DNA of 63,378 nt, the filler included, from Choristocarpus tenellus KU-1152 (taxonomy: Eukaryota > Protista > Phaeophyceae), in NCBI GenBank assembly GCA_964200185.2. It is 7 parts of 7 records of this genome, joined end to end, with 100 filler letters (N's around TTAATTAATTAA, not from the genome) between each part and the next. Parts side by side here need not be neighbours in the genome. Positions count along the whole stretch, not along the records: positions 1 to 17,588 come from CAXNAD020000659.1; 6 more parts are not named here. One strand, written 5' to 3'. The notes below the pieces were generated by a model. That model ran no database searches. It worked only from the letters and a program-made list of their open reading frames with translations, and was not told the origin of the DNA. This document shows positions 1 to 17,588 of the stretch, one piece after another; positions within the stretch are counted from its first letter, which is position 1, and each line of letters begins with the position of its first letter. A program made the position numbers and the translations under genes.

Positions 1-29
1 CCCCCCCCCCCCCCCAGATACTTTGAGCC
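1..29. mobile_element. End of a family-1 MITE (poly-C followed by CAGATACTTTGAGCC terminal inverted repeat)
   Basis: Same terminus as the copies at 4829-5005, 5100-5282, 6360-6538 and 47366-47434. Confidence 0.7.
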
Positions 30-1924
30 AGTAGTAGACTTGTTCATGACCTTTCAATAAATTATAGATGAATAGCACATCAGTGTTGCTTGTCGCTTAG
101 CAAACAGCTAATCTACTCCAGAAATCTCTCATCGTAAAAAATTCTGTGGACCGTCTATTGAAGAGCCATCTAGTAGAACCCTTGACTCAAAAACTTCCCA
201 TTCAGTCATTCAGAAAACCAAAGTGAATTTTAATCCGTACCTCGTGAGAACTCATGACACACCGGTATACTTTTCGGTGATGCTGGTCCAATGCACTCCT
301 CGCTCGGCGCTTCCCTCTCCACCTCCTGTCGCCCTCTATTTCTCCTCCACCTAGAAAGTAGTAGCCATCCTACACTCCAGCCATGAAAGACCCCAGTGTT
401 ATAAACAGGAAGTTGGGCAGTGCATCCAAGCATACCAATAAATATTGTGGATGAATCTTGGAGGACATCAAATGACATTACCTGTATGCCACTTTGAAGT
501 ATTGAGATCTTGTCGTAAGCACACTATCTGGACAATCTAAGCACCTTATGTAAGGTAGAGTGACATGTCTTGCTCCTGATGTGCAAACGCATGTTCTACC
601 TTCGGAGGCCAATCCCCTAAGCTTGATAGCCGAAAACGCTTGTATTGTATGCTTACATTAAAGCATGAGTATTTTGTTTGTGTGTACAATGGGAAAGGTA
701 TGTTATAGTTATATTGCTCCTTTGAGAATGGTTGTGCTGCAGGGTTCAACTTAACATTGTCAAATTCTAGGGATAGCTGTAGCTTAAAACTCAATCTCTT
801 TTGTCAAGTATCGAGATACAACCATTTTGGACCACCAATGCAGCAGTCATGCTTACTATTGGAATATTGAAAAAATCAGAGGCAGGGGTGCTGCTAGACT
901 GTCTGTGGGTCATTACCCCACCAAAATAGTTGCACACTCTCCCTGAGCGGTCACCTCAACCTTTAATTTTTTCCTTGAGTCTGTTACCTGGATCCCCCCT
1001 TTCACTCACTATTCATTCTTCTGCTGTTGTGGGAGTTGGGAAAGCATTCCAGTCAGGACTCAAACTCGCATCCTCTGGTTTTGATAAGACTTGAGATACC
1101 TCTGTACTTGAACATGAGTTGCCTTGAGTGTCTGGCTCAGTGGTACAATGGCATCTCCATATTTGACAACTATTGAGATACACTTTATACAGCAAGAGCT
1201 GAGATGAGCAAACATGTTTTCAATTTGACCATAAATCTGATCATGATGTAGAGATGTTTTCAGGACTCTAGACCTTCAGAAACTGCTTTGTTGTAGTATT
1301 TTTTGTGAATCATGATGATCTAATCAACTTGGATCGTAGAGTGAAAGAATAACCAAGACTTGCAATTCGAACATTTTGATTGGTCAAGTATTTGCACTTG
1401 AAGCACTTTCTCAGTTCCCTTAAAATTTCCAAAATGTAGCTCTTAAAATTGTGATTGATAATGGTTGATGGTGGTTGACCCTACTGTTGATGGTGGTTGA
1501 CCCTACTTATTTTTCAAACTACTCTCTGTGCAAAGCATACCTGATTAGCAGGACACACATATTCCTAATGATGTTTGGCAAGAGGTTCAGTGCATATCTA
1601 TTAATGTAAAAAAATGGTGAAGAGATTGTCAACAGAGACTAGAAGTACTGTTGAGCAGTGTGTTACTGATCCAATAATCTCTTTCTATTGTACCCTATTG
1701 TACATCTTGCATCATACCAAAGAGAGGGCTGAGTGCATAGGTTGTTGAAGAACAAGGTATGATATTGTGCAGTGTGCTGTTCGAATGCAGGCCTGTTAAA
1801 AGCACCTGCCAGTAACACACAGCCAGGTGTTTCACTGTTGACTTTGTTGATGGGCAGGTGGGACACCATAGATTACATGGGATATACTCCTCCCATGTCT
1901 CAGTATTCGGAACCATCTACTCAC

Positions 1925-3525
1925 CTCCAGAAAATCATCCACTGATGGTAAACGGGCTCCACCTCCTGCATGGGCTGGGACATCCGTGGAGTATTTTGGG
2001 ATGGGCAGCACTGGTATGTCTGTGGTATACATACGAGGACGTGAGCTGGCACTGAAGTCGGAGCCCTCAAGCCTCACTGCATCCTGGCGCCAACCGTAAT
2101 CAATCTTCTCCTGGTTTACTGCCTCTACACATACCTGCCATATTGTTGAAAGTATTTGTGAAAGAAGAGATAATTCAAAACATTCAGGCAAGTATCTGTT
2201 TATTCACAAATAAGGAAATGAAGGACGCCTATAATACCATCTTCCACATTGCACACCCTCTCCACAGTCTCCCAGTTCTCCAGTAGAGGAATGTATGGGT
2301 GGGGAAAGAATCTGTACCTGCTCTGAGAGATATACCGCGCCTGGGTTGTGCTGAAGGACCCAAGAAACGATCTTCTGAGCCTGCTGGAAGACAAAAAGCA
2401 TTGTCATAAAGTGTTCATGAGGTAACATGATAAAATGGAGAGAAAATAATAATTTTTTCAATCCTTTGATACTACTCAGTTTGGAAAACGTAGCATTGGT
2501 AATAGGAAGACAGCCACAATTATAGTGAGTGAACATTCCTCAACGACTGATAGGTAAACTCAGCATTGGAATTTTGAAGAGTTATAGAGTTAAGGTTATG
2601 GTTAAAGAAGGGGAATGGTAGTGTGGAGTTGGTGTTTGATTTGGCTGTGGAACTCCACCCTTACACCATCATATATATTCCTGTAATTATTAATAGGATA
2701 GATGACTTCAAGAAAAACATCGGTATAACATAAAGATATTCGCCTATGCCACTACTCCTGTTGTTCACCCACCTGCACTGTGAGCATACCCCTCTGTGAG
2801 CCCAAGCCCCCTCGATTAGCATTGACTAAGGTAAAATCCTGACAGGGCATGGAGGTGAATGTGATATCAATTCGACCCACCCTTGCAATATCCTCCTCAC
2901 TCAAGCTGATGACATCCCCAGAGCCGTCTTTGCCCATCATCTTGATTGTCGTGCCTTATTGGTGTGGCCGTTGGTACATTAAACACTGATGAATTACAAC
3001 ACATCATTTTTCGAATACTTGGAAGATATCAGTGTTCATACACAAGAGTCAATATTTCAAACAAGCTGTATATTCAACTCACTAGAAATTTCATGGGTTG
3101 TATACTCAGGGAGCGTCAGTAAATGTTTGGAACTCACAGCAGCTTTTGATTCGACAACACCTAATCGACTCTTGCACAATGGGGCATTCTACTGCCTTGG
3201 AGGCAAATGCAAATATTTTAATCCCCCCTTAAACAAGGTAGCTCCGCAAAGGACTCCAAGTGCTTGTTTGTACTTACCTCTGCTCTTCCATTGGTAAAGT
3301 ACCCCCAGTGCAACAGAGTCAACATCTGTTGCTAGGTAGGTTATGTGCTTTGGGTCAATGCCTGTGGCACGTACAAGTGCGAGGAGATCTGATCCCATCC
3401 CTGTGGTAAAGTGGGTAGGGCAGAAGGTGAGGTGCCGACCTTTTGTCAATTGGCAAACCTTGCTTTAATTTAGGCCTGACAATATTTTGGAGGGACTTGT
3501 ATGTGTGTACAGGTGTGTGTGTCTG

Positions 3526-3561
<36 letters not shown>

Positions 3562-4764
3562 ATAGTTTGTGTGATAGTGTTATGATGCCAAGGGGAGTCT
3601 GAGAGGAGTCAATGGAGATATTCAAGTGGGACGAATAAAGGGTATGTCAATGAGTGCCTATAAACCAGAACTCGGGGCATTGTGTGGCACAGGAAGGCCT
3701 CACTCCTTACTGATCCTTGAGGGTTTTCTCTCTTGTTCTTCATGCCTTGTCGATATCACCCCGACTGTGCACATCTTATAGCTGCCGGTGTGTTGAAGTG
3801 TGTTCAGAGAAAGGGGGTTCGTATGCAACACATTATATTGTGATAATATTTTTCACTGCTGCCATTGAAGATAGTCAAGGATGAAATTTAAAATGGAGTA
3901 GGGGATCATCCTCTGGCACCAACCACTAAATTTGGACTAAATAAGAAAATGAAAGATGTGCAACTTTTGCGGTGATAAAAACACATTAGCACTCCTGACT
4001 AGAGTGAGCATGTGAGCTTACCCCCAGCGAGACTCAAGACCACTAGCTTTTGAAGCCCCCCTCTCTCTCTGACTTCGGCTTCAATAGCTTCAAACCTCTC
4101 TGATGATGATAATACCCCTCCATAGAGGGGGTTCCCAGGAGCATCATTTGCCTTTTTCCATTCCTCAGCTGGGCAATCTATCCTTCTTCCACTCTCTGTT
4201 CGATGCAATGCTTCACACTGGTTTGATCCTACAGTCTCACCATTTGTTCCTGGTGCAGGCCGAGCAGCTCCCTTTACCCCTCCCCCCCTCCGTATCCCTA
4301 CTCTTGGCGTTGGATTGTTTTCCAGTGTCTGACCTCTCACACTGTTTGTCCGGGGGTGGACCATGGACCGCAGCAACCGATTTGTTTGGTGTTCCTGATA
4401 CAAATCCTCCTCCCCCTTCTCCTTCTCGACCTCCTCCTCGATCTCCTTCTCTGCCTCCTCTTCACTCATTTTCTCTTCCTTCTCTTCATCCCCTTCTTCG
4501 TCTTCCTCCTCTTTTGAGGGTGCTCTCATCCCCTTAGGTGCTGTTCTCCTTGCTGAGATGATTTCCCTATAGCCCTCTCCCCACTCCACCACCACTGCAC
4601 CCTCTTCCTCCATAACCCCAATAATGCCACACCTAGCCCACACACAACACACCCCATCATGTGTTTCGAGGTGCAGGGCGTCAGCCTCATCTCCAGGGCT
4701 CCAAACAGAAGCATCACCAGAAAGCCACAGCCGGTTGGCTTTATCACGGCAATCGTCACATACC
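1925..4764 (-). CDS. Spliced DNMT3-like C5-cytosine DNA methyltransferase with an N-terminal CxxC/Tudor-like region and acidic linker; 5' and 3' ends not resolved
   Basis: Phase-consistent GT-AG exons on the minus strand: 4764-4022 (...KLVVLSLAG), 3400-3278 (GMGSDLLALVRATGIDPKHITYLATDVDSVALGV...), 2954-2773 (GDVISLSEEDIARVGRIDITFTSMPCQDFTLVNANRGGLGSQRGML), 2380-2318 (AQKIVSWVLQHNPGAVYLSEQ) and 2134-1925 (VCVEAVNQEKIDYGWRQDAVRLEGSDFSASSRPRMYTTDIP...VDDFLE). Motifs I, II, IV (catalytic PC), VI and VIII (RxR) occur in order. Spacing resembles DNMT3 (VLSLFDG / YIASEV / GDVRSV / SPCNDLSIVNPARKGL / ENV / SAAHRARYFWGNLP). Confidence 0.85.
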
Positions 4765-4828
4765 CTGGAAACACACACATATAGAAGAAGATTGACAATC
4801 AATGGTAAGTGTGAAGGTGCTAAAGACT

Positions 4829-5005
4829 GACTCAAAGTATCTGGGGGGGGGTGAAGTCTACACCAGGTGTCCATTCCGGCCCTGACCAGGACAAGTGCAC
4901 TTGCATTATCCATCCGACTTGTACAACCAAATCACCCAAAAATCGTGACATGGAAAAATGGGCCCCAAACGGACAGCCGGCACCCCCACCCAGATACTTT
5001 GACCC
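4829..5005 (+). mobile_element. Family-1 MITE (about 180 bp, PIF/Harbinger Tourist-like)
   Basis: TIRs GACTCAAAGTATCTG(G)n ... CCCAGATACTTTGACCC; internal sequence shared with 5100-5282 (inverted) and 6360-6538. Confidence 0.75.
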
Positions 5006-5099
5006 TCAAACACCCCTACAAAGAACGGTGTGGTGGTGCGATGCCTGGAGGCGAGAGAGCATGAGACTCGGATGCATTGGGGGACGGCGGAGACCATCA

Positions 5100-5282
5100 G
5101 GATCAAAGTATCTGGAGGGGGGGGCGGCGTCTCTCCACTGGGGGCCTATTTTTCCATGTCGCGATTTTTGGGTGATTTTGGTTGCATGCGTCAGATGGAT
5201 AATGTATGTTCACTTCTCCTGGTCCGGGCCCGAATGGACACCCCGGTATAGACACCCCCTCCCCCCCGGATATTTTTGAGAC
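5100..5282 (-). mobile_element. Family-1 MITE inserted in a mariner relic, TCA target-site duplication
   Basis: TCA at 5097-5099 and 5283-5285. Removing the insert restores collinearity with the mariner copy near 61.0 kb (GCCATCACAGAGGACTTTGG on the minus strand). Confidence 0.8.
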
Positions 5283-6349
5283 TCACGCAGCACTTTGGAA
5301 TTTCTCAAATCACCATGTTCCATCATCTAAAGGAGAACGACAGCTCGACCGTGCAGGGTGAACGCACGGACCTTGTACCATGTCGCAAGGGGTGATGTGG
5401 TCGCCGTACAAGCATCCTTGACGTTTGGGATGTCCCATCAGTACACCACACATCCTTGTACAAGATGGGCGACCGAAGCTGGGATCTCCCTTGTCTCGTT
5501 GTGGATCCGTTCAAGCACGAGAAGGTGAAGAAGTTCAAGTGGTGGATTAAGCCAGTCCTCTCAGACCAGCAGAAAGTCAACAGGGTGGGTTTCATCATCA
5601 GTCACACAAAAAGGAGGGGAGAAAGTGGGATAGTAGAGGGCGATCTGTGTGACTGGGTACATGTGGACGAGTAGTGGTCTTACATCCTCAAATATGGGCA
5701 AGGTGTGCACCTGCACCCAACTGAGCACCCCACCAAACCCCAACGGGCACAAAATAGGCGTTAGATTGCAAAGGTGATGTTTCTTGCACTTATGGCCCGC
5801 TTTAGGAACCTCTCCACTGGGGTGTGGTTCGATGGAAATCGGGATCTAGCAATCGTGGATACTAGGGTCTCAGTGCTCCAGTAAACACCACCCCAAGGGC
5901 ACCAAGGTTCTTGTGTCAGCCACGGTGGACGGGGAGGGGTATAAGAAGCTCAAGATTGAGGATGTCATCCCGGCAATCAAGACCTTCCATGTCTAGGCCG
6001 GGACACCATCTTCATGCAGCAGGATGGGGTAAAGCTACTCATCAAGGAGGGGATCATGGAGCCAATCAAAGAGGCGGCGGAGGACAACATTGTCATAGAG
6101 ACCCAGCTAGTCAACTCGCCTGAGCTCAACATCAACGACCTGGGATTCTTTCATTCCATCCAGCAACTGAAGGAAGATGTGAGGGTGACCAACACAGAGG
6201 TGCTGGTGGAGGCCACAACGGAGGCATTTGATGTGTACTCCCGGGAGACATTAGAGCCCGTCTGGCAGAGCCTCTTCACAGCCTACAGTGAAGTGCTGGG
6301 GTTCAAGGGTGACAGCATCTCCAAACTTCCCCATCTCAGGAAGGAAAAT

Positions 6350-6790
6350 GAGTCAAAGTGAGTGAACGTATCTTGGGGAGGGGGGGGGTCTACAGCAGGG
6401 CTTACATTCGGGCCCTGACCAGGCGAAGTGAAGTTACACTATCCATCTGACGCATGCAACCAAATCACCCAAAAATCGTGACATGGAAAGGTGGGCCCCA
6501 AATGGACAGCCGCCACCCCCTCCCAGGTACTCCGAGCCAGTATCTTAGAGGGTAGAGCCGTGTCCGTTTGGGGGCCAAAATACAACGTTGCGATTTTGAT
6601 GTCATTTTGGTTTATCGTATTTGTTAGGAAGTGGTAATATCCTTGTTCCGGACTCACCTTTCATAACGTTTACATTTTACCTACTCCGAAATATTTCCGA
6701 GTAGAGAAATGTCATAAAAAAACCTGTGGGAAGCCAAGCCCCAAACGGACAAACGGGGCAAAACTTGTGCCCTCTAAGATACTTTCACTC
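6350..6790 (+). mobile_element. Family-2 MITE (about 260 bp, AAT duplication) carrying a nested family-1 MITE at 6360-6538 (AGT duplication)
   Basis: AAT|GAGTCAAAGT [GAGTGAACGTATC...TACTCCGAGCC] AGTATCTTAGAGGGTA...CCCTCTAAGATACTTTCACTC|AAT; homologous to 41234-41498 and 54596-54855. Confidence 0.8.
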
Positions 6791-9339
6791 AATACTGAGA
6801 AGGTGGGCAAGTTCCCCATGAACGCCTGATGGATGTGGCGAAATACTTTGCTAGAACAGAGTTTTGGAGGGCTTCGGGAGCGGAATCAATGGTAGTGGTA
6901 TGCTGCCCCACTTTGCTTGAGATTCTAGTGGGCAACCCTTCACTGCCTGCACAATACACCCATAAGATATGAACCTGCAAAAAAAACTTGCTTCTTCATC
7001 GGGGCTGCAAAATATAGTATGTTATAATTAATTCCAAACAGACGAACTAGAATATTTTTCCTTGCTAATTGTTGGTGAGAGGGAATAGTTTTGGGATTTT
7101 CTCTTGAGTTACGTAGTTTATTGTTGGTGAGGAGTTTATCGAGATGAGGCCAAGTCTGGCACCGTGTCGAGCACTCGTGTGCTCTCTGTTACTATTTTAA
7201 GGCGGATATAGGGGATGATGTTGTCTTACTGTACCTGGTCCACTCTGTGTCGCTCTGTGCGGATTTGTTGAGTGGTTCATATATCCTACTTCCTTTCCGC
7301 ATGGTCCTAAGTTTGGAACTAATACTTCTTCAAAAAAATCTGATTTATTATTCCTCCACCATGTCTTTCTCTCTGTCCATAATCGTATAACGTAGTAGCA
7401 ACTGGTCTACTGCTACCACCACAACATGTAACAACAGAATATTTTACAATAATATTAGCAATGAAGACAGAATAGATGGAAACGTGGAGTTGGAAGAATG
7501 AGAGAAGAGGTGGCCCGTGTACGACAAACATTCATCACAAACAAAATGATCATTGATGCTTTCTGCACATCATCATACATTGCACAAGAAAAATGAATTA
7601 ATGCTTGCAATAGTGGCAACAGTATGTATCTGCGATGTATGGAACACGATACAAACACATTAGAAATAGTACGTCGCATATCTCCTGTATAAAATAAAAT
7701 ACAGAACATACACAGCAAATTGAACTTAATTCTGTACACTGTATCTCTATTGTACCTGTTACACACAGCAGAGTAGAAACCTTATTGAGTCAAAACGACA
7801 CACACCTAGCGTTGTATTGATAAGGATGTGAGCAAATGTGCAAAACTCGACATTTTGTAGAAATGCGTGTAGGAGCCTCCTTGAATTCTGCGAAGAGTTC
7901 AAACAACAAAGAAATCAATGCTCTCGTGTTAATCCTTACACTTCATCCCGCAGAAATTTGGTGAATTGCGAAAGATGAAGTGGCTTACAATGCCTAACTG
8001 AAACAAACTTGGGTACCTCACGTTTACTTTGGTTCGGTGTGGTAGTGGTGAATATTGTGCTCAGACATACACACATTGAAACAAACATTGAACATGCACG
8101 GCTAAAACTATTCTGTATGCAACATTGAAGGTATACCAACAGACAACATGCGTACACGTTCGTTTTCTCTAACCTGCAGACGGCAGTTGCCGATTCCACA
8201 CTCTGTTGAAGGCTCTCAATATAAGAACAAGGTGATAAATGGTTAAACTGCATCCAACATCGACGTTATACTGACATATACATGCACTTCTGCTGTAAAT
8301 TTTGCAGCCTCCCCTTCATTTGTATTATTTCAACCTTTCCCCGCAAAGATTCGTATCCATCAGGCGGAAAGCAAAGTTCAAACACAGAAAAGAGCCTTCA
8401 ACAGGGTGTGGCATATCCGCAACTGCAGTCTGCGATTGAGTATGTGTTGAGCCTATCTGCGGCACCACTGATAGTCCTCCAACCCTGCACAAATACATTT
8501 TGCCACGCTGTCCATCTGTCCTCTTACTGCGCATGGATGCGTGAACCTCCGTGCATCCACTTGATTTATGTAGCAGCGTTCAAACCACCAATTTGCCAGA
8601 ACCGCCTGGTGATACGGACCCAGCAGCAATGGGAAGGGTTAGGGATAGAAGGGAGATACAAAATTATTGTGGCTCAGATATATTCAAACAATCCCTGCTA
8701 ACAAGAGATTAGCTTATGTTTTGGTGGGTGTACTGCCACCACACCACAACAGTGGAAAGTACTACAAGGATGATACTGTGTTAGAACTTTCTGTAAGCCC
8801 CTTAGCTCGGTACCCGGCAGGTAATCAGCTGACTATTAATCTCGTTGGTGTCTGAAGAATATACTAAGTTTTTTTAACCGATACAAAACTGTGCAAGTGC
8901 ACAATACCAGCACAACTGCCTACTGTGGTTGGAGTTATCATTACTAACACCACCGCTAGGGTACTACTCCAATAATATAGGCAGTTGCTGTAAGATGATA
9001 AGAAGTACAATAAACGCCAGGGACTCTTGATGCGAACTTTGAATGATGAGAAAACACTATCTGCTTAAGCACTTATCTGAATGACAGTGTTGCTTGCTGC
9101 GACCTTTGATGAGAAACAAACTACAACCGTGGGAGAAGGAAGGAGATACAAAAAAGGGGGAAGAGGGAACGAGGGAGAGATGCAGTGCCGGTATCAAAGA
9201 ACCCAATAAAATAGTGTGTTATTTGCACTAGCATATTGCTTACAGTGTCTTTCTATTCTTTCTAGATCCAAGAATCTTTATTGTTTCAAAGGCATTTCGC
9301 AATTTATTTCAACTTAATTCCATTATCTCTGTTTCTGTG

Positions 9340-10609
9340 TGTGCCGCCTCCTGTGTCTGTGTACTGTATGCAGGTTGTGAGTGAGTAGTTCAACATTTTT
9401 ATGGGTGATGAGGTACAGTCATGTGACCTTTTGCACGACAGGACTGCCGACCAGGGAGCAAACATCCTCAACACTCTACGTGAGCTAATGATATCTGCAA
9501 TAACATCGGCTGTGCGCATAAGCTTGAAAGCTTTTGTTATGTAAGCGCTCTGTATGATCAGTGCTATGTAGACACGGGGAAGAACAAAGCGGGCAGAACT
9601 ACAAGAAACACAAAAGAAATATCAAGAGGCATCTCCACGGTGAGGAGTGGGCACTCTTGCGTGAACTACCCAGTCTTCTTGAGCTGTCGACAGATATCAC
9701 GGCTGGTATTCAGGGTGGGCGTGATTGTTTCATGGGCAGAATCACTTGTTTCATGACTGACCTCAGTAACATCTACAGCGAGGATACACACCCCATCAAG
9801 AATTTGTGGAGCAACGGAGATGATGCCGTGGAGGATGTATCAGTGGGAAACCTCATTGATGGTTCGCAAGTGTCCCTCAGGATTCTCCTTGAGGATATGA
9901 AGGCGCGAAAGCTTGGTGTGCCAACTATTGTTGAGGAGCAAGTGACACTCTTTCTTGTCCCCCATACCAAAGATTGAGCCATAGACTTGTGCACTAATGG
10001 GGGCTCTTGGTTTTTAAAAAGCTGTTGCTGACCTAGAGCACAAAAGGGGACTCTCTTCTGGATGCAGGCGAGAGAGCCGAAGGTTTTGCTGCCATGATAG
10101 GTGGCAATGAATCTGATCCTGTGTCGATGATACCTGGGTTTTGTGACTGGGAGAACTCGTAGATGGTAGAGCAGCAGCAGATGCAATGCCTACAGCAGAA
10201 GGCGTGAAGGATGTCATCAGAGAAAGGGAACAAGGGCAGTCCAAGAGTGGGCATTCATTCGAGGTTCTGAGGCGAGTATCTAAGAGAGGAGGAGAGGTCG
10301 GGTAGTTAACAGTTCGACCTTTTGATGTACTGGAAAGAGAAGGCAGCGTCAAAGAAAGACGGGTAGAGCAAGGTGTTACAGGCTTCTCAAATGCCCCTTT
10401 TGGCTATGTTTACCGGACTTTATCACGGAATTATTGGCACAAGTTGTCAGTCTGAGAGAGAAATCTCAAGCCTCGCCCTCACACTCACCGTCTCACTTTG
10501 TAGTCTGGATAGCGTAAGGGTGAGGAGACTTACGTACTTGCACCTCGATAGTAATCTCACCAAGGAGGGGCCTAATCAAGACAGGAGGTGGGTGCTAGCA
10601 ACCATGTGA
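9340..10609 (+). pseudogene. Degenerate hAT-family transposase remnant
   Basis: Broken frames, including EEWALLRELPSLLE...LFLVPHTK (LDPR-K equivalent) and a dimerisation-domain-like C-terminus MPLLAMFTGLYHGIIGTSCQSEREISSLALTLT...SLDSVRVRRLTYL (compare hAT P.LA.LA..YL.IPATS..SER.FS). Confidence 0.65.
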
Positions 10610-11356
10610 AAGGAATCTCCTATGAAGTGTGTGTATGCCAGAAGAAAGTGGCAAGTGAAGTACTTGTAGCATAAGCTATACTGCTGAACGTCTGTTGAGA
10701 ATGCAACACTTTTTATTTTGGGTTAATATGCATAGCACCAGGAAAAAAATTGGAGCTACGTTTTTCTTTAACTGAAATTTATTAATTAGTTACGTTGATA
10801 CTGTGGTGGTGTCTAACCTTCTTACAAGGATTTTATGTGGAACAGATTCTCATTGGCCAATGGTCAAATATGCCAATTGCACGTGTGTAAATTAACAATA
10901 AAATCGATTGATGTATGCCTCCTGACATTCTCACTGCACATACATATATCTATGTTCCTCACGGCTTCGACTCAAGAAGTTCCAGAGATAATTTGAAAGC
11001 GTACTTACTATCTACTTGAACATGTTGGATCGTTACACAGCCTGAAAAATATGTTACACAATTTTTTATTGTTCGCATGGAGAGGACAAATGGAATTGAC
11101 AATTGGATTGTAGAACACGTAGTGGACATGATTTGGACATGCAAGAAAAGAAATCGAACTGGTTGGCAGCCATAATCCGGACATGGAAACTTTTTTTTTT
11201 ACCGGTATAATACTCGGTGTTCATGGTCTGGACATGTTTAGAGGATGCTCAACCTGGTCTGACCGATACCGGCGGACATGGACCGGGTCAATACCTCATG
11301 AACATGGACTGGCACATGTTAAATAATCATGGGATCGGTCCGGTCAGTGTACGGGA

Positions 11357-11593
11357 GTTAGTGTTAGGGTTACGGTTATGGTTATGGTTATGGTTAGGGT
11401 TAGATTATCGAAAATGAGTGTGAAAATGTGAAAGTGGTAGGTCCTGAAGAGGTTGTGGTTCCCCAGTTTACTATACTCCTCCACCACTTCTGTCCTCTAG
11501 AATCTTTCCTAGGTTGGTTAGGGATATTTTTTACGCACAAGTTTGGGTGAGGGTTACGGTGAGGGTTAGGCGAGGGTTAGAGAGCAGGGTTGG
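11357..11593 (+). repeat. Degenerate telomere-like (TTAGGG/TTATGG/TGAGGG) hexamer patches
   Basis: GTTAGGGTTACGGTTATGGTTATGGTTATGGTTAGGGTTAG and GGTGAGGGTTACGGTGAGGGTTAGG. Confidence 0.5.
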
Positions 11594-12793
11594 TTTTCAA
11601 AAGTGCGGGCGAAAAAGTGAACAAAACATGTGGGGGTTCCCCTCGGACGGTAGGGGTTACCGAAGACAGGGGGGTTCCCCTGTGCACTGCACTGTTGATT
11701 TCTCTTTGTTAGATTTTTATTTACAGAATTCAGAAAAGTTCCCGTATACATTTGCACAAAAAGCCGACTTTTTCACAACATTGTTAGCCTCCCTTACCAC
11801 GCAACCCTGGGGTACTATAGACAGTTCAACAACAGCAACTGATCTATGATGGGTTCGTAAGGACTGCAAACGCCTCAGCTATGGTAGGAAATCCCCCATG
11901 CTGTGTGTACATTAGGTCTCGCATACTTTGGCTCAAGGTCCTCTAAAATAGATTCGACACACGAGGGATGCATGCATAACAAAACCACACGACACGATGT
12001 CAGATAATGAGTCCTATTTGACCGTCTCCTCCCTCACAAAAATCTCTAAGAGAGCAAGACAAAATGCATGTTTTGTTCCACCCCGGAAAATTTAATAATA
12101 ACCGTTCAAACATCACTATTTCAATATCCCAGGTGTTGAATTCTGATCCCTCTGTGTTCAAAAGGATTTGTGTTGGATTCAGTAGGTGGCACACAATAGC
12201 AGGTGAAGAAAGGTTTATGACTTTGTCGGTCATCCATCCACCCCTGACTTATTACTTTGTGTAAGTCAGGAAATTTCTGAGATCCGGATAGTATGGTCAC
12301 CCGTTTCCCAAGTAAATGAAGGGGCCTGATGACTGGTTCATGGATTCATAAGTTCGAGCTTCCAAGAAGTAGTATTATCACATATGTACTAGCAGTTCAT
12401 TGATGATGTTCTCAAAATCCCCAAGAATTTTTTTATGCGTAGATGGAATAATGTACAGGATTTATAGAAACAAACAATAATTTCAAGTATTTTTGTAGAA
12501 TAATTTATGGTCTTTAGGAGTAAATATATGTGGCACTCTTTTTTTGGTGGCAGTTGGTCTCATCCGCTAAATCCGCACCACATCGCTTGCAATCCTTTTT
12601 TGATACATTTCGAAGAATAATATGTATTTGCTTGTCGAAAAAAAACTGTTCCATCAAAATCTTGGTCCCCTCATCAGTCTGCAGCACACAAAAACACACA
12701 CACACACACACACCTTTCAAAATCAAGGACAACTCCCTCTCTCCTACTATCAGCTGATCCTCCACTCCCTTGAGGAAGAGACCTCACCTCAAC

Positions 12794-13202
12794 ATGGCTC
12801 TGCTACCCTCTCGACCCGTGTTCCTTGGTCTGTTGACCGCCCTCTACACCCATTGCACAACCGGTTCGTACTAAAGTACACTATTCGAACCAATTCACTA
12901 GTTTTCTCATGTTCGACGAATTACACGTGCCCGAAGCTGGTAAAAGAGGCTATAGCTGATGCATCGCTAAGACACCATTACATCAAACGAACGCATGCCA
13001 ACCCACAACCTAAATGTCACTTTCAGGCGTATGGGTCGAGGTCGGAACCAAGGGTCAGGTGGGGTCTTCTGCCACGGCGTTCGATCCACGTTTGCAAGAC
13101 AACAGTGGCTGCAATCCAAGCGGTTGTACTCCTGCTTTGTCTAGGGTGAGTGCGTCAGTGAGCAAGCAGTATTTGTTGACTTCAGACAGCACAGCCAATA
13201 TC

Positions 13203-13242
<40 letters not shown>

Positions 13243-16090
13243 GAGAGGTGTAGTCGCTTATCAACATGAAACGAGTTGTGCATTTCAACTGTACAATTCA
13301 CAACCATCTCCTGACCGACCACCCCCAAACGCTTCACAGGATGGAAGCTTGACTCCGACATCAAGGTGGTCCTGCTCCACAACTCTCGGGGTCAATGAAT
13401 GCTCCATCACATACAGTTTCGGCACACCTCAACCTTTCAGGCGCATAGATGTTGGTGAGATGTGGCGGTTTGACTGGTTCCCTTGGCGGTCAACCTTTTG
13501 TTGGCATGTTTTGATTGATGTATTTTCTATGCAGCAGGGGTCAACTGTCGTCCTCATCATGCGTAGTCACAACCCTATCTGAAAAGCCTCTCCATCTACT
13601 ACTATATGAAAGGCGTGACTTTCTCTATTGTTGGTGTTAAGGTCGCAAGGTTGTACGATAACATTCTTTGGCATGAGAACCAGATAGCAGGCAGGAGTGT
13701 TCGAACGTTCCAAGTCTTAAGAGTGACCCTGACTATGAAAAGGTCCCAACTGCGGCGGGACTACGTCACTCATGTCTTACTACATGGAACACGCCGCAGG
13801 TACTCTGTACAATGCCGAGCTCCCATACAGGTGGAATGAAGCAGAAACCAAAGTTATCGCAAACGGCTAATCCAAGAATTTCCACACTTCAGGGGTTTCT
13901 CGTAAAGAGAAGCAGTAGCATGCAATAAAATTAATCGTAGCCTTGAACGGGGATGACCCAGGAAATCTGAACCTGGAGTGGGATTATTTTTCTTGCAAGA
14001 TGCTCTTGTAAGATCCTTCCCCCCTGCGTTTGAACATCCCTCCCTGTATGTTACATGTCTCCTTCTGGGCGTTCGTTTGGCAGTCAGATAACGCTCCTGA
14101 GGAGATATCAATCCTACTGAACTCCAATCCCATTTTGTTGCTTCATTCTCATTCTCCAAGGAAGGGTTGGGTGAGGAGGTGGCAGCCAATTTCACAAAGG
14201 CCCTCCCAAGTTAGTCAATGAGGACAATCTCTTGTCAGTCTGAGGACTGAGAAACTCTCTGGGCTTAGCCAGTCTTTCTTCAAACACCATGGGAGTTTTT
14301 GCTACTCCACACAGTACTTCAATCAATAGTACCGAATTATAATTCAGCGTATAGGGCCTGCGACTCTTACACTCTATCCTTTACCTCTTTACCACCAACC
14401 GGTCCTGCAACTACTATCACCTGGCGCGTACACTAACAGAAATCCCCTCATTGATTGACGATATCCCCCACCAGCGTTCTACCTGGGAGATGAACGCACG
14501 CGCCAGTTTGAGGTGGACAGCGACAGCACAAGGATGATCGACGATGAGAGTTCAGGGAACACTCTGGACTTGGAACAGTTCGGCCCGACAACAGAAGTTT
14601 TCCTCACTGACGAAGTCACCATTGTGTCCACACCCGTCGATGACGGGGAATGGTTCAGCCTCACCGAGGTATGTAGTAGTGGTGGTCTCAGGCATTGCCC
14701 TCAAATACTGATCTTGAATTGCTTTTGAGAAAATGATTTATTATTGTTTTTCAATACAGGGGAAGACATCCTTGATATCGTCATTTTCACGGAGAATCCA
14801 TACACCGTAGCCTGGAACACATTTTGTACTGTGTTTCTGCCAGCCTTTCTCGAAGAGCCATACAGTGCAGCGCAAGAAGGGTTACATCCATCTCGTGTGT
14901 TGTGTTTTCCAACCTTATAGCTGAGGAGGCCTCGTACAGCGCAAAAGAACACACGAAACACACACTGCTGTATAGAGTCTCGACTACTTGCTATCCAGGA
15001 GATAACTTTGGCACAGGTGTCGTTTCAGGGTACTTTCGAAAAATCGTGGTGTGGTAAACTTCTATGAAGCAAGTATTACCCGTTGAAGAATGGACTGCAC
15101 AATCCGGCACATGTTGTCCACCCTCGCCACCTCAATCTCTAATGCCACCAATTCCCTTATCTCGCTGTCTCAATTGCAGGTGGATATTTGGGTGATTCGA
15201 GGCGAGGAGGTTGCCGATTCGGGCAGATCTGTAACTGTTTCTGCAACGGGGTTCGATGATCGTACAGACTCTGGCTGCAACGGCCAGTGCCTTGCTTCTA
15301 ACTCGAGGGTAAGGGACTATATGTGATGTACGTAAGTGCTTCCAAACCGTAAATAATTGCCACTAGCCGATGCAGGGCGAAGAGTCAGTGATGGGTACAA
15401 TCAGGGTTGTTGTCACAATTCTGCTCGGAAGAAAAGGAGAAAGGCAGTAGTCAGTATGATGAAGATCCCAGTTAGAGTACCTTTCATAATACCAAGTGGT
15501 CGCGTTGAAACCTGCACCGTGTCCTTCCTCCTGCAGGACGGCAACTACGAAAGCGATGCAAGCCGTTGGTCGTGCATCAACTCTGACGCCACAGGAGGGC
15601 TGTGCAGTATCACCTACGACTTCTCCTCTGGTGCCCGCCTTGACAGCATTCTTGTATGTGAGTTTCCTCATAACATTTTTGCATCCACAGAGTAGGCTCT
15701 GGTGTTGCATGGACGTCCAGAACCGTACTTGACAGCAGGCTGTTGCAAAAAAAGGACATCTAACTGTAGCTTACAACGTACGCACGCATACCATGAACTC
15801 AACCACAAACAATTATCAACGCCCACCCCACCAGTAACCTCTGCCCACTACCCCCTCCTGTTATCCCCCCCTCAGCCCTCTACCTGGGCGACGAGCGAAC
15901 ACGTTCACTAAGTGTGTACCTCAACGGCAATACTAGTCCAGAAACAACTTGGACCAGCTCCGGCAACACGGATGGGTTTGAAGAGATTGAGATTGATCGC
16001 CAAGGGATCACCTCTGTCAAGCTCGAAGCACTCAACCTCGGGACTGAGTGGCTGAGCATCAAGGAGACCATGTTCTACGTCAGCACCTGA
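12794..16090 (+). CDS. Secreted protein (about 320 aa) with two tandem beta-sandwich repeats (F5/8 type C / galactose-binding-like, brown-algal type)
   Basis: Seven phase-consistent GT-AG exons: 12794-12863 (MALLPSRPVFLGLLTALYTHCTT, signal-peptide-like), 13027-13145, 13340-13454, 14475-14668, 15180-15308, 15537-15657 and 15876-16090 (TGA). Repeat pattern: SAT.FD.R...GC...C..A.SR-DG.....SRWSC....G..CSITY.F / YLGDERTR...SSGNT...E...EW.S..E. The fold assignment is from motif recognition only. Confidence 0.82.
13207..13237. repeat. (GA)n microsatellite in an intron
   Basis: Direct reading of the sequence. Confidence 0.9.
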
Positions 16091-17588
16091 GCGTACATAA
16101 CTTGTTCCCCTTGATGACTGCAAACGTACGTTTCACAGCTGAACCAGCAGATGAGGTGGTCTAGATCTTGAAAACTGTGTGATACGCTATTGGGCATACG
16201 TTTTTTCAAGATGAATGCATTGCATGCATATGGGGTCCACGTAAAGTGACCTAATATGCAAACGACTATGTACAATATGGAAGCATCTCCTCCACACGGT
16301 GTGGTAGGGTCCATCTCGTACCTAAATTCTTTTCGATTGGAGTACGTGTCCGCACACTGTGGGACGTGATTGTGTAGGGCACTGGCCCAGTCGGTTGAAG
16401 CATATCCAGCCTATTTGCTCGCACCATTCTTTCTGTACATATCTGTCTAACTGGATAGGTGTGATTAGGGTAGGATCTCAAGAGGAACAGGCGTTCGTTT
16501 TTGTGAAGAACTACCACTCTACTTAAGCTCGGAGGAGGGCACGCGAAAAACATTGGTTGGATAAGAGAGGGAAAAGGGTTACGTCTCACTGATTGTTGAG
16601 CGCCGGAGTCGGCCTAAACTTGCGTCCAGAATCGCACAAAAAAATGTATATTCCGTTTGAGAATTCCCACAAGTTGGTATCCCCAGGGAGGTCGTAGATG
16701 TCACGATCCACGAACAGTCGTGAATTCTACTCGCTGGGGCGGTGGGTCCAGGAGCTTAAGTGGTTGCAAATGCTGTGAGAAGTTTGAGCTGGGGTAACCT
16801 TGGCGTGAGAAAACGAAATAGAGAGCAATTCAGCCTTGGCCGGACTTGGTTATAGCTTGATCAGCCTAACTAAGCAGGTTCGTTTTTGAGCTTTGGTTGT
16901 ACCTTTGATATTAGATTACATCGTATTTCCCATTCCTTTCTCATTTCATAATAATTAAATTGTTTCAATGTATGAATATTTCGTCTCTCCAACCACGACT
17001 CCATCTTTGCCTTCATCAAGGTGCTGTTGTTGACAGATGCAAAGGTTGGGGGCTCCAGAGAAGGATGAAGATTGATTCTGTAAAACATAGGCTACTTATT
17101 TGTTTGTTCCTTGATACGATACAGTTCCACCAGTCAACGCTGGCTGTTGATTGGTCTGTTACGTTCTGGACGTTGCTGTCACTAGTTCATCATCACCACA
17201 TCAATTGCAATCAGAATATAGTAAAATAGTATTCGTCACTTGAGTTTCTTAACACATATTGGTTCAAGTTTGTTCTCTTGTTCTCTTGTTCTCTTGTTTG
17301 TTTTTCTTTCACTCTTTCTTCTTATCAACAGAAGATGACAGTTGAACGTTGATTGTTGATTGTTATTTTTTTCGTGACTGCCATTGATCCCTCACAATGC
17401 ACCCAACTCACTCTACAATGAGTGCACCAGCTACACATCTGAATGCAATTTAATCAGGGTTAAAAAACCATCCGCGGAAACCCTTGCCAGCCAAGGTAAT
17501 AGGCCTCTCCACCGAGCATGGACTTCTTTCGTTGAGTATCTCATGAAAGAACACTGAATTCACATCACATCATTCTGGATTGAGCAAC

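Follow-up and report, generated by a model that had tools for sequence, protein, structure and literature searches.

Do the earliest-branching brown algae still possess a DNA methyltransferase of the de novo, DNMT3 type? Brown algae are the textbook example of a lineage with complex multicellularity that has abandoned DNA methylation, and the question is raised by an intron-containing gene in a 63,378-nt stretch of DNA from Choristocarpus tenellus KU-1152 (GenBank assembly GCA_964200185.2). This stretch, the window, consists of seven parts joined end to end; all positions given here count along the whole window, and the analysis was carried out on its first part (positions 1–17,588, CAXNAD020000659.1). 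On balance, we read the locus as a nuclear, spliceosomal-intron-bearing gene of the Discosporangiales which would encode a highly divergent DNMT3-type (cytosine-5) methyltransferase.

On the minus strand, five open segments (4764–4022, 3400–3278, 2954–2773, 2383–2318 and 2134–1925) join in phase via four GT–AG introns. A preliminary description of the locus had claimed five open reading frame fragments spliced in phase, and this was borne out with the same outer limits, 1925 and 4764. Exon limits were read from the sequence and their coordinates verified by script, and library searches were made exon by exon. Along the minus strand the exons are as follows:

4022..4764, minus strand: exon A; acceptor ttccag, donor gtaagc, phase 1 at the donor; G+C content (GC) 52.8%
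3278..3400, minus strand: exon B; acceptor ccacag, donor gtaagt, phase 1 at both ends; GC 50%; contains G-MGSD and YLATD
2773..2954, minus strand: exon C; acceptor aataag in phase 1, donor gtgggt at 2772 in phase 0; contains GDVISL and TSMPCQDF
2318..2383, minus strand: exon D; acceptor ttccag, donor gtacag, phase 0; 22 amino acids; GC 54.5%; ends in ..AVYLSEQ
1925..2134, minus strand: exon E; acceptor tggcag, donor gtgagt, phase 0; 70 amino acids; GC 53%

The acceptor AG of exon A is located at 4766–4765 and its donor GT at 4021–4020. The in-frame part of this exon (4763–4023) encodes 247 amino acids, leading from a Cys/Trp-containing N-terminal stretch through an acidic, E/K-rich linker to the start of motif I (..VVLSLAG + G), so that the exon ends with LSLAG plus one G base. 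For exon C, the GTGGGT at 2772 was taken as the donor because splicing from a nearer GT (after ..SQRG) would put exon D out of frame; following motif IV, this exon carries a DNMT3-like VNANRGGL stretch. In exon E the V of motif VI is the first codon, followed by motif VIII (SASSRPRMY) and then by the first part of the target-recognition region (..VDDFLE). All frames of each of the four introns (621, 323, 389 and 183 nt) are interrupted by stops. About 440 codons are open over the five exons, and the predicted protein, counted from exon A, would comprise approximately 500–550 amino acids. A (GT)n/(GA)n compound microsatellite is present within intron 1 (3508–3560) and another one in a neighbouring gene region (13207–13237); (CA)n and (GA)n runs are found in the 17,588-nt part.

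Joins of this kind are weak evidence by themselves because GT and AG sites are common. The five-exon arrangement is nevertheless more than a chance one, given the long open reading frame, the contrast in GC, the library matches of exon C described below and the collinearity of the motifs. The open reading frame of exon A has 310 codons from stop to stop and is the longest in the 17,588-nt part; across 200 shuffles, the corresponding length averaged 144 codons and never exceeded 224. GC was 50–55% in exons A–E (pooled 52.5%) versus 36–44% in the introns (pooled 40.4%). GC at the first codon position (GC1) was higher than at the second (GC2) in exons A, B, D and E, a coding-like pattern; the values for exon A were 0.64 versus 0.46. 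Motif order and spacing are collinear with those of C5-methyltransferases, with the spacing judged against that of DNMT3A.

Motif I (4030–3390), motifs II, III and IV (3330–2830), motif VI (2330–2130) and motif VIII (2050–2030) follow each other along the minus strand in the non-permuted order I-II-III-IV-VI-VIII, which separates the gene from DRM. DNMT3A likewise has a non-permuted I–X order, with a short target-recognition region between motifs VIII and IX and a motif VIII of the form SA..R.R. Motif I of the present gene reads LSLAG-G-MG and is split by intron 1; its GxG is kept, with Ala in place of the near-invariant Phe of F-x-G-x-G. In motif II (YLATDVD) the acidic residue is kept as Asp, and motif III is GDVISL in exon C. 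Motif IV, TSMPCQDF, has the Pro-Cys nucleophile and is paired with SPCND of DNMT3A in the PDB alignment. Motif VI, LSEQ-V, is split by intron 4 and keeps Glu and Val, with Gln for the Asn of E-N-V. Motif VIII, SASSRPRMY, contains R-x-R and was assigned by reading, exon E being without a library alignment. Apart from motif III, these motifs had been listed in the same order in the preliminary description, which had likewise noted that the catalytic Cys, the motif VI Glu and RxR are kept and that motifs I and VI are non-canonical. Because the canonical FxGxG and ENV are not found, we call the gene DNMT3-like and not a confirmed family member.

The assignment to a family comes from exon C. When this exon was compared with the PDB, 29/29 matches at E ≤10 were DNMT3A, DNMT3B or DNMT3C, so that the nearest solved relatives agree with the DNMT3-like character proposed earlier for this intron-containing gene. 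The best match was DNMT3A (E 0.0045, 20 bits), over 47 aligned residues spanning GDV..S, PC and VN..R.GL. DNMT1, DNMT2, DNMT5, DRM and bacterial enzymes were not among the PDB matches of exon C even at E 10. In Pfam, exon C matched PF00145 with E 0.013–0.026 (14–15 bits, short of the family's gathering score of 22, a cut-off meant for whole proteins) and in NCBIfam TIGR00675 (dcm) with E 0.024. Exons A, B, D and E had no match of their own in PDB, Pfam or NCBIfam, with exon A yielding low-complexity noise only. A match of exon A to the PWWP or ADD reader domains of animal-type DNMT3 was found neither in Pfam nor in the PDB; this bears on the animal subtype only, because protist and algal DNMT3s are generally without such domains. 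By eye, the first 60 residues of exon A bear a faint resemblance to a PWWP domain; this likeness was rejected, as it was unsupported by Pfam and PDB, and a single-sequence AlphaFold2 model was uninformative (mean predicted local distance difference test score 50).

Among known enzymes, animal DNMT3A, DNMT3B and DNMT3C are thus the only ones with solved structures matched by the motif III–IV exon. Similarity to them is very low, with AGGMG for F-x-G-x-G, EQV for ENV and no Pfam-detectable PWWP or ADD domain in the present gene. The intron positions seem to differ from those of animal DNMT3A. DNMT1, reported from Discosporangium mesarthrocarpum, Schizocladia and Chrysoparadoxa, shares the superfamily and the algal neighbourhood and would be the expected maintenance partner. 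It differs in belonging to a separate family of large proteins with replication-focus and BAH domains, and its PDB chains were unmatched by exon C at E 10. Plant DRM enzymes form a DNMT3-related clade and likewise have a motif IV region of the PC..L...N....GL type. They are, however, circularly permuted (motifs VI–X before I–V, whereas here I–IV stand before VI–VIII), and no DRM structure was matched. The DNMT3s of diatoms and other protists, for instance Phaeodactylum Phatr3_J47136, are stramenopile DNMT3-family members without recognisable chromatin-reader domains (PMC9998398, PMC12344493), and are compared here by their description only.

Since exon A starts at an acceptor, the gene requires one or more exons further upstream or else a cryptic start. 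The region 7060–9500 was checked for a 5′ exon and contained nothing convincing. Two candidate exons on the 3′ side and a transposon remnant on the 5′ side frame the five exons:

1704..1805, minus strand: candidate exon F, 34 amino acids, phase 0 at both ends; found by reading, optional, low confidence
546..776, minus strand: candidate terminal exon, 76 amino acids (776–549) plus a TAA stop (548–546), phase-0 acceptor AG at 778–777; found by reading
4872..7059, no strand assigned: remnant of a degenerate Tc1/mariner-type (DDE_3) DNA transposon that contains nested repeats; it falls in the promoter or the 5′ intron of the methyltransferase gene

Candidate exon F holds TGLHSNS, which is reminiscent of the DNMT3 target-recognition or DNA-contact loop; it has a GC of 44% that is flat across codon positions, and no match in PDB, Pfam or NCBIfam. 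The candidate terminal exon, with a GC of about 40%, reads ..FSKEQ..IPFPLYT.., which is motif IX-like, and about 20 residues later the motif X-like ..RLSSLGDWPPKVEHAF (LGDWPPKV). These are similar to FGFP.HYT and LG.SWSVPVI.HLF of DNMT3. A pattern drawn up post hoc (FP..Y[TS], then LG..[WF]..P 8–30 residues on, in an open frame) occurred once in the whole 17,588-nt part, namely in the candidate terminal exon, and in 1/20,000 simulated 1.9-kb regions. Even after a heavy post-hoc discount, this suggests that 776–549 is a real motif IX–X exon, and it was kept as a candidate. As a motif X exon, the segment 1396–1313 (..LGYSFTL..) was ranked below this candidate in view of its GC of 34.5% and its non-coding codon-position pattern, its PDB matches being chance ones to Spt4/RpoE''. 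A perfect 22-bp tandem duplication at 1464–1507 is situated in what is presumed to be an intron or the 3′ region beyond exon E.

The transposon remnant also allowed the genomic setting to be assessed. It has arms resembling terminal inverted repeats at 5166–5272 and 6369–6475 and frameshifted transposase reading frames on the plus strand at 5456–5674 and 6014–6361. Its 115-amino-acid open reading frame had 74 protein relatives, two of them (2/74) carrying PF13358 and every one recorded as an ‘unnamed protein product’ from either D. mesarthrocarpum or C. tenellus. Because all 74 come from these two Discosporangiales species, the transposon family is a taxon marker of this order, in which it is abundant. 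For comparison at the DNA level, three C. tenellus contigs and one D. mesarthrocarpum contig were used: the transposon is 77–81% identical to the copies in the C. tenellus contigs and 70% identical to the D. mesarthrocarpum contig. Non-coding flanking repeats are common to the 17,588-nt part and the C. tenellus contigs, at 72–85% identity. The DNA is of brown-algal origin, in keeping with the brown-alga-like genome proposed in the preliminary description; its GC, repeats and CpG depletion agree best with C. tenellus, and nothing points to human DNA. The host integration of the gene proposed there is likewise consistent with its flanks, since none of 35 flanking open reading frames has a reverse transcriptase, integrase or viral domain. 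An Rfam scan of the 17,588-nt part gave no match.

The DNA around the gene is strongly depleted of CpG. In the 17,588-nt part, GC is 45% and the observed/expected ratio of CpG 0.54, compared with 43.5–44% and 0.32–0.43 in the three C. tenellus contigs and 51% and 0.72 in the D. mesarthrocarpum contig. Within the methyltransferase gene, the CpG ratio is 0.39 in exons and 0.31 in introns. TpG and CpA in the 17,588-nt part reach 1.26–1.27, with 0.83 for the GpC control (0.8–0.9 for GpC across the compared contigs). Depletion of CpG together with an excess of TpG and CpA is the usual footprint of the deamination of 5-methylcytosine at CpG sites in the germ line. The pattern suggests heavy germ-line CpG methylation in this Choristocarpus-like genome, and a working DNA-methylation system in the organism is therefore plausible. 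On the de novo activity of the predicted enzyme, the depletion bears only circumstantially.

If expressed, the gene would give rise to an enzyme whose catalytic domain, spread over at least five exons, keeps the residues required for the chemistry, i.e. GxG, the motif II Asp, Pro-Cys, the motif VI Glu and Arg-x-Arg. GxG and the acidic residue of motif II would serve S-adenosylmethionine (SAM). Ordinary C5 methylation would then be expected, in which the target cytosine flips out, the Cys attacks C6 and the methyl group moves from SAM to C5. The predicted enzyme may carry out de novo methylation alongside the DNMT1 reported in Discosporangiales, possibly with CpG specificity and with chromatin targeting by its N-terminal region; such a role would fit the CpG depletion.

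Searches for relatives covered very large collections. The open reading frame of exon A had no relative in a set of 5.8 billion clusters, and an exact look-up found it not on record; exon E likewise gave nothing in the 5.8 billion cluster set. Against 1.84 billion representative proteins exon C had five matches, all of them repetitive proteins with summed weak stretches, which were dismissed as spurious. Back-translated scans of IMG/VR and of Joint Genome Institute (JGI) metagenome contigs with exons A, C and E returned nothing. As the annotated proteins of both D. mesarthrocarpum and C. tenellus are in the searched collection, the gene, or at least its motif III–IV exon, is outside the published protein sets of these species.

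The Phaeoexplorer study recovered DNMT1 solely from D. mesarthrocarpum, Schizocladia and Chrysoparadoxa, with DNMT2 in the other species; Table S11 of that study contains no sheet for DNMT3, and C. tenellus is missing from it. The underlying screen ran BLASTp against predicted proteomes with a bit score >70 and an identity >30%, and the D. mesarthrocarpum DNMT1 was assembled by hand from five contigs. A chromatin survey from 2026 describes DNMT1, DNMT3 and DNMT5 as absent across brown algae, based on a sampling that did not include Discosporangiales. According to Hoguin et al. (PMC9998398), diatoms apart, most stramenopiles lack DNMT3, and algal DNMT3s are without reader domains. A DNMT phylogeny from 2025 (PMC12344493) puts forward early-branching, DNMT1-containing brown algae as a lineage deserving methylome work, and describes DNMT3-like genes in Copia and DIRS retrotransposons as well as virus-borne DNMTs in other eukaryotes. 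Discosporangiales have been reported to be without viral insertions. In the surveyed literature, no report of a brown-algal DNMT3 was found. The contrast with Ectocarpus drawn in the preliminary description has to be toned down: because this is the one brown-algal order already known to keep DNMT1 and the DNA is strongly CpG-depleted, a DNA methyltransferase is less paradoxical here than had been implied. A gene as divergent as the present one may moreover fall below the BLASTp thresholds of surveys, which is a warning about reported absences.

Taken together, the gene is real, divergent and DNMT3-like, and it is probably either functional or inactivated only recently. Several points weigh against a functional DNMT3-type gene. 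Neither a start codon nor an exon upstream of exon A could be identified, the sole ATG in frame further upstream (4913) belongs to transposon-derived sequence, and the transposon remnant begins about 100 bp upstream of the exon A acceptor. The candidate 3′ exons are without a match in PDB, Pfam and NCBIfam and have a non-coding-like composition. Library support was obtained for only one exon, with modest scores (14–20 bits), and exons A, B, D and E were assigned by motif reading and by the spacing in DNMT3A. Motif I has Ala at its nearly universal Phe position, and EQV takes the place of ENV in motif VI. No relative of any exon appeared in the protein, metagenome and IMG/VR collections searched, and DNMT1 alone could explain the CpG depletion. 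That open frames and short motifs came together by chance within non-coding DNA is nonetheless hardly credible. Four of the five exons do lack a library match of their own, and in-phase joins can usually be found among frequent GT and AG dinucleotides, but exon C matches the predicted family alone in three libraries. The exon A open reading frame is longer than in all 200 shuffles, the GC contrast between exons and introns is sharp and the motifs are collinear. We consider it just as far-fetched that the methyltransferase belongs to a mobile element or to an integrated giant virus and is not a host gene. Retrotransposon-borne DNMT3s and virus-borne DNMTs exist elsewhere (PMC12344493) and a transposon adjoins the gene, but this element is a separate small Tc1/mariner remnant with inverted repeats of its own. 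The gene has at least four spliceosomal introns, the flanking open reading frames are without reverse transcriptase, integrase and viral domains, the IMG/VR scans were empty and, as mentioned, viral insertions are reported to be lacking in Discosporangiales.

More serious is the idea of a decaying DNMT3 relic, i.e. an ancestral brown-algal gene which was recently inactivated and is heading for the loss seen in all later-branching brown algae; we regard this as possible without expecting it. The transposon remnant directly upstream, the failure to find a 5′ exon or start codon, the F to A change in motif I and the N to Q change in motif VI would all fit such a decay. The same applies to the 3′ exons, which are not confidently identified and intron-like in composition, and to the finding that no protein with a similar motif III–IV exon turned up in collections which include D. 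mesarthrocarpum and C. tenellus proteins. The latter is weak evidence, however, because annotation is easily missing in draft assemblies, as illustrated by the D. mesarthrocarpum DNMT1 that was pieced together from five contigs. Furthermore, neither a stop nor a frameshift interrupts the approximately 440 codons of the five exons, 8/8 splice dinucleotides are intact, the gene still has the catalytic Cys, Glu and RxR, and a clearly coding-like GC and codon-position bias persists in the exons. A catalytically inactive, DNMT3L-like regulatory paralogue, in which the fold is kept to bind or modulate a methyltransferase or chromatin and SAM binding is weakened, appears improbable. The non-canonical AGGMG and EQV and the long N-terminal region would agree with it. 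Mammalian DNMT3L, however, has lost catalytic residues, whereas PC, E and RxR are kept in the present gene, and no active DNMT3 partner is known in the lineage.

Returning to the divergent DNMT3-type gene preferred here, a further-reaching version of this reading can be offered only tentatively, and so can the separate stramenopile lineage and the altered substrate or SAM binding suggested in the preliminary description. The earliest-branching brown algae may keep an active, lineage-specific de novo enzyme of the DNMT3 type beside DNMT1, as part of an ancestral system for establishing and maintaining CpG methylation that would have been lost after the Discosporangiales split. The enzyme would have an unusual pocket for SAM and cytosine (Ala, Gln) and an undescribed N-terminal targeting region. 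With a DNMT3-like gene in a strongly CpG-depleted Discosporangiales genome, DNA methylation in early brown algae may have relied on a richer set of enzymes than the DNMT1 credited to them so far. The inferred ancestral toolkit would shift from maintenance only to de novo plus maintenance, and its loss could be dated more precisely. The locus also provides a concrete gene for testing in the lineage that has been named for methylome profiling (PMC12344493).

Beyond the transposon remnant, two further regions of the 17,588-nt part have features of genes:

9558..10600, plus strand: region with GC 48% and positive GC skew; 139-codon open frame at 9558–9974 and more downstream
13331..16087, plus strand: neighbouring intron-containing gene with two tandem copies of a two-exon module, 36–40% identical

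The open frames of 9558–10600, which gave no Pfam matches, may be exons of another plus-strand gene, divergent from the methyltransferase gene. In the gene at 13331–16087, the first exon of the module reads ..SRWSC..CSITY.F.. and the second ..YLGDERTR..SSGNT..EW.S..E, with no match in Pfam or PDB. An interstitial telomere-like (GTTAGG)n tract at 11357–11403 and a related 11-mer array at 11546–11580 are located mid-contig.

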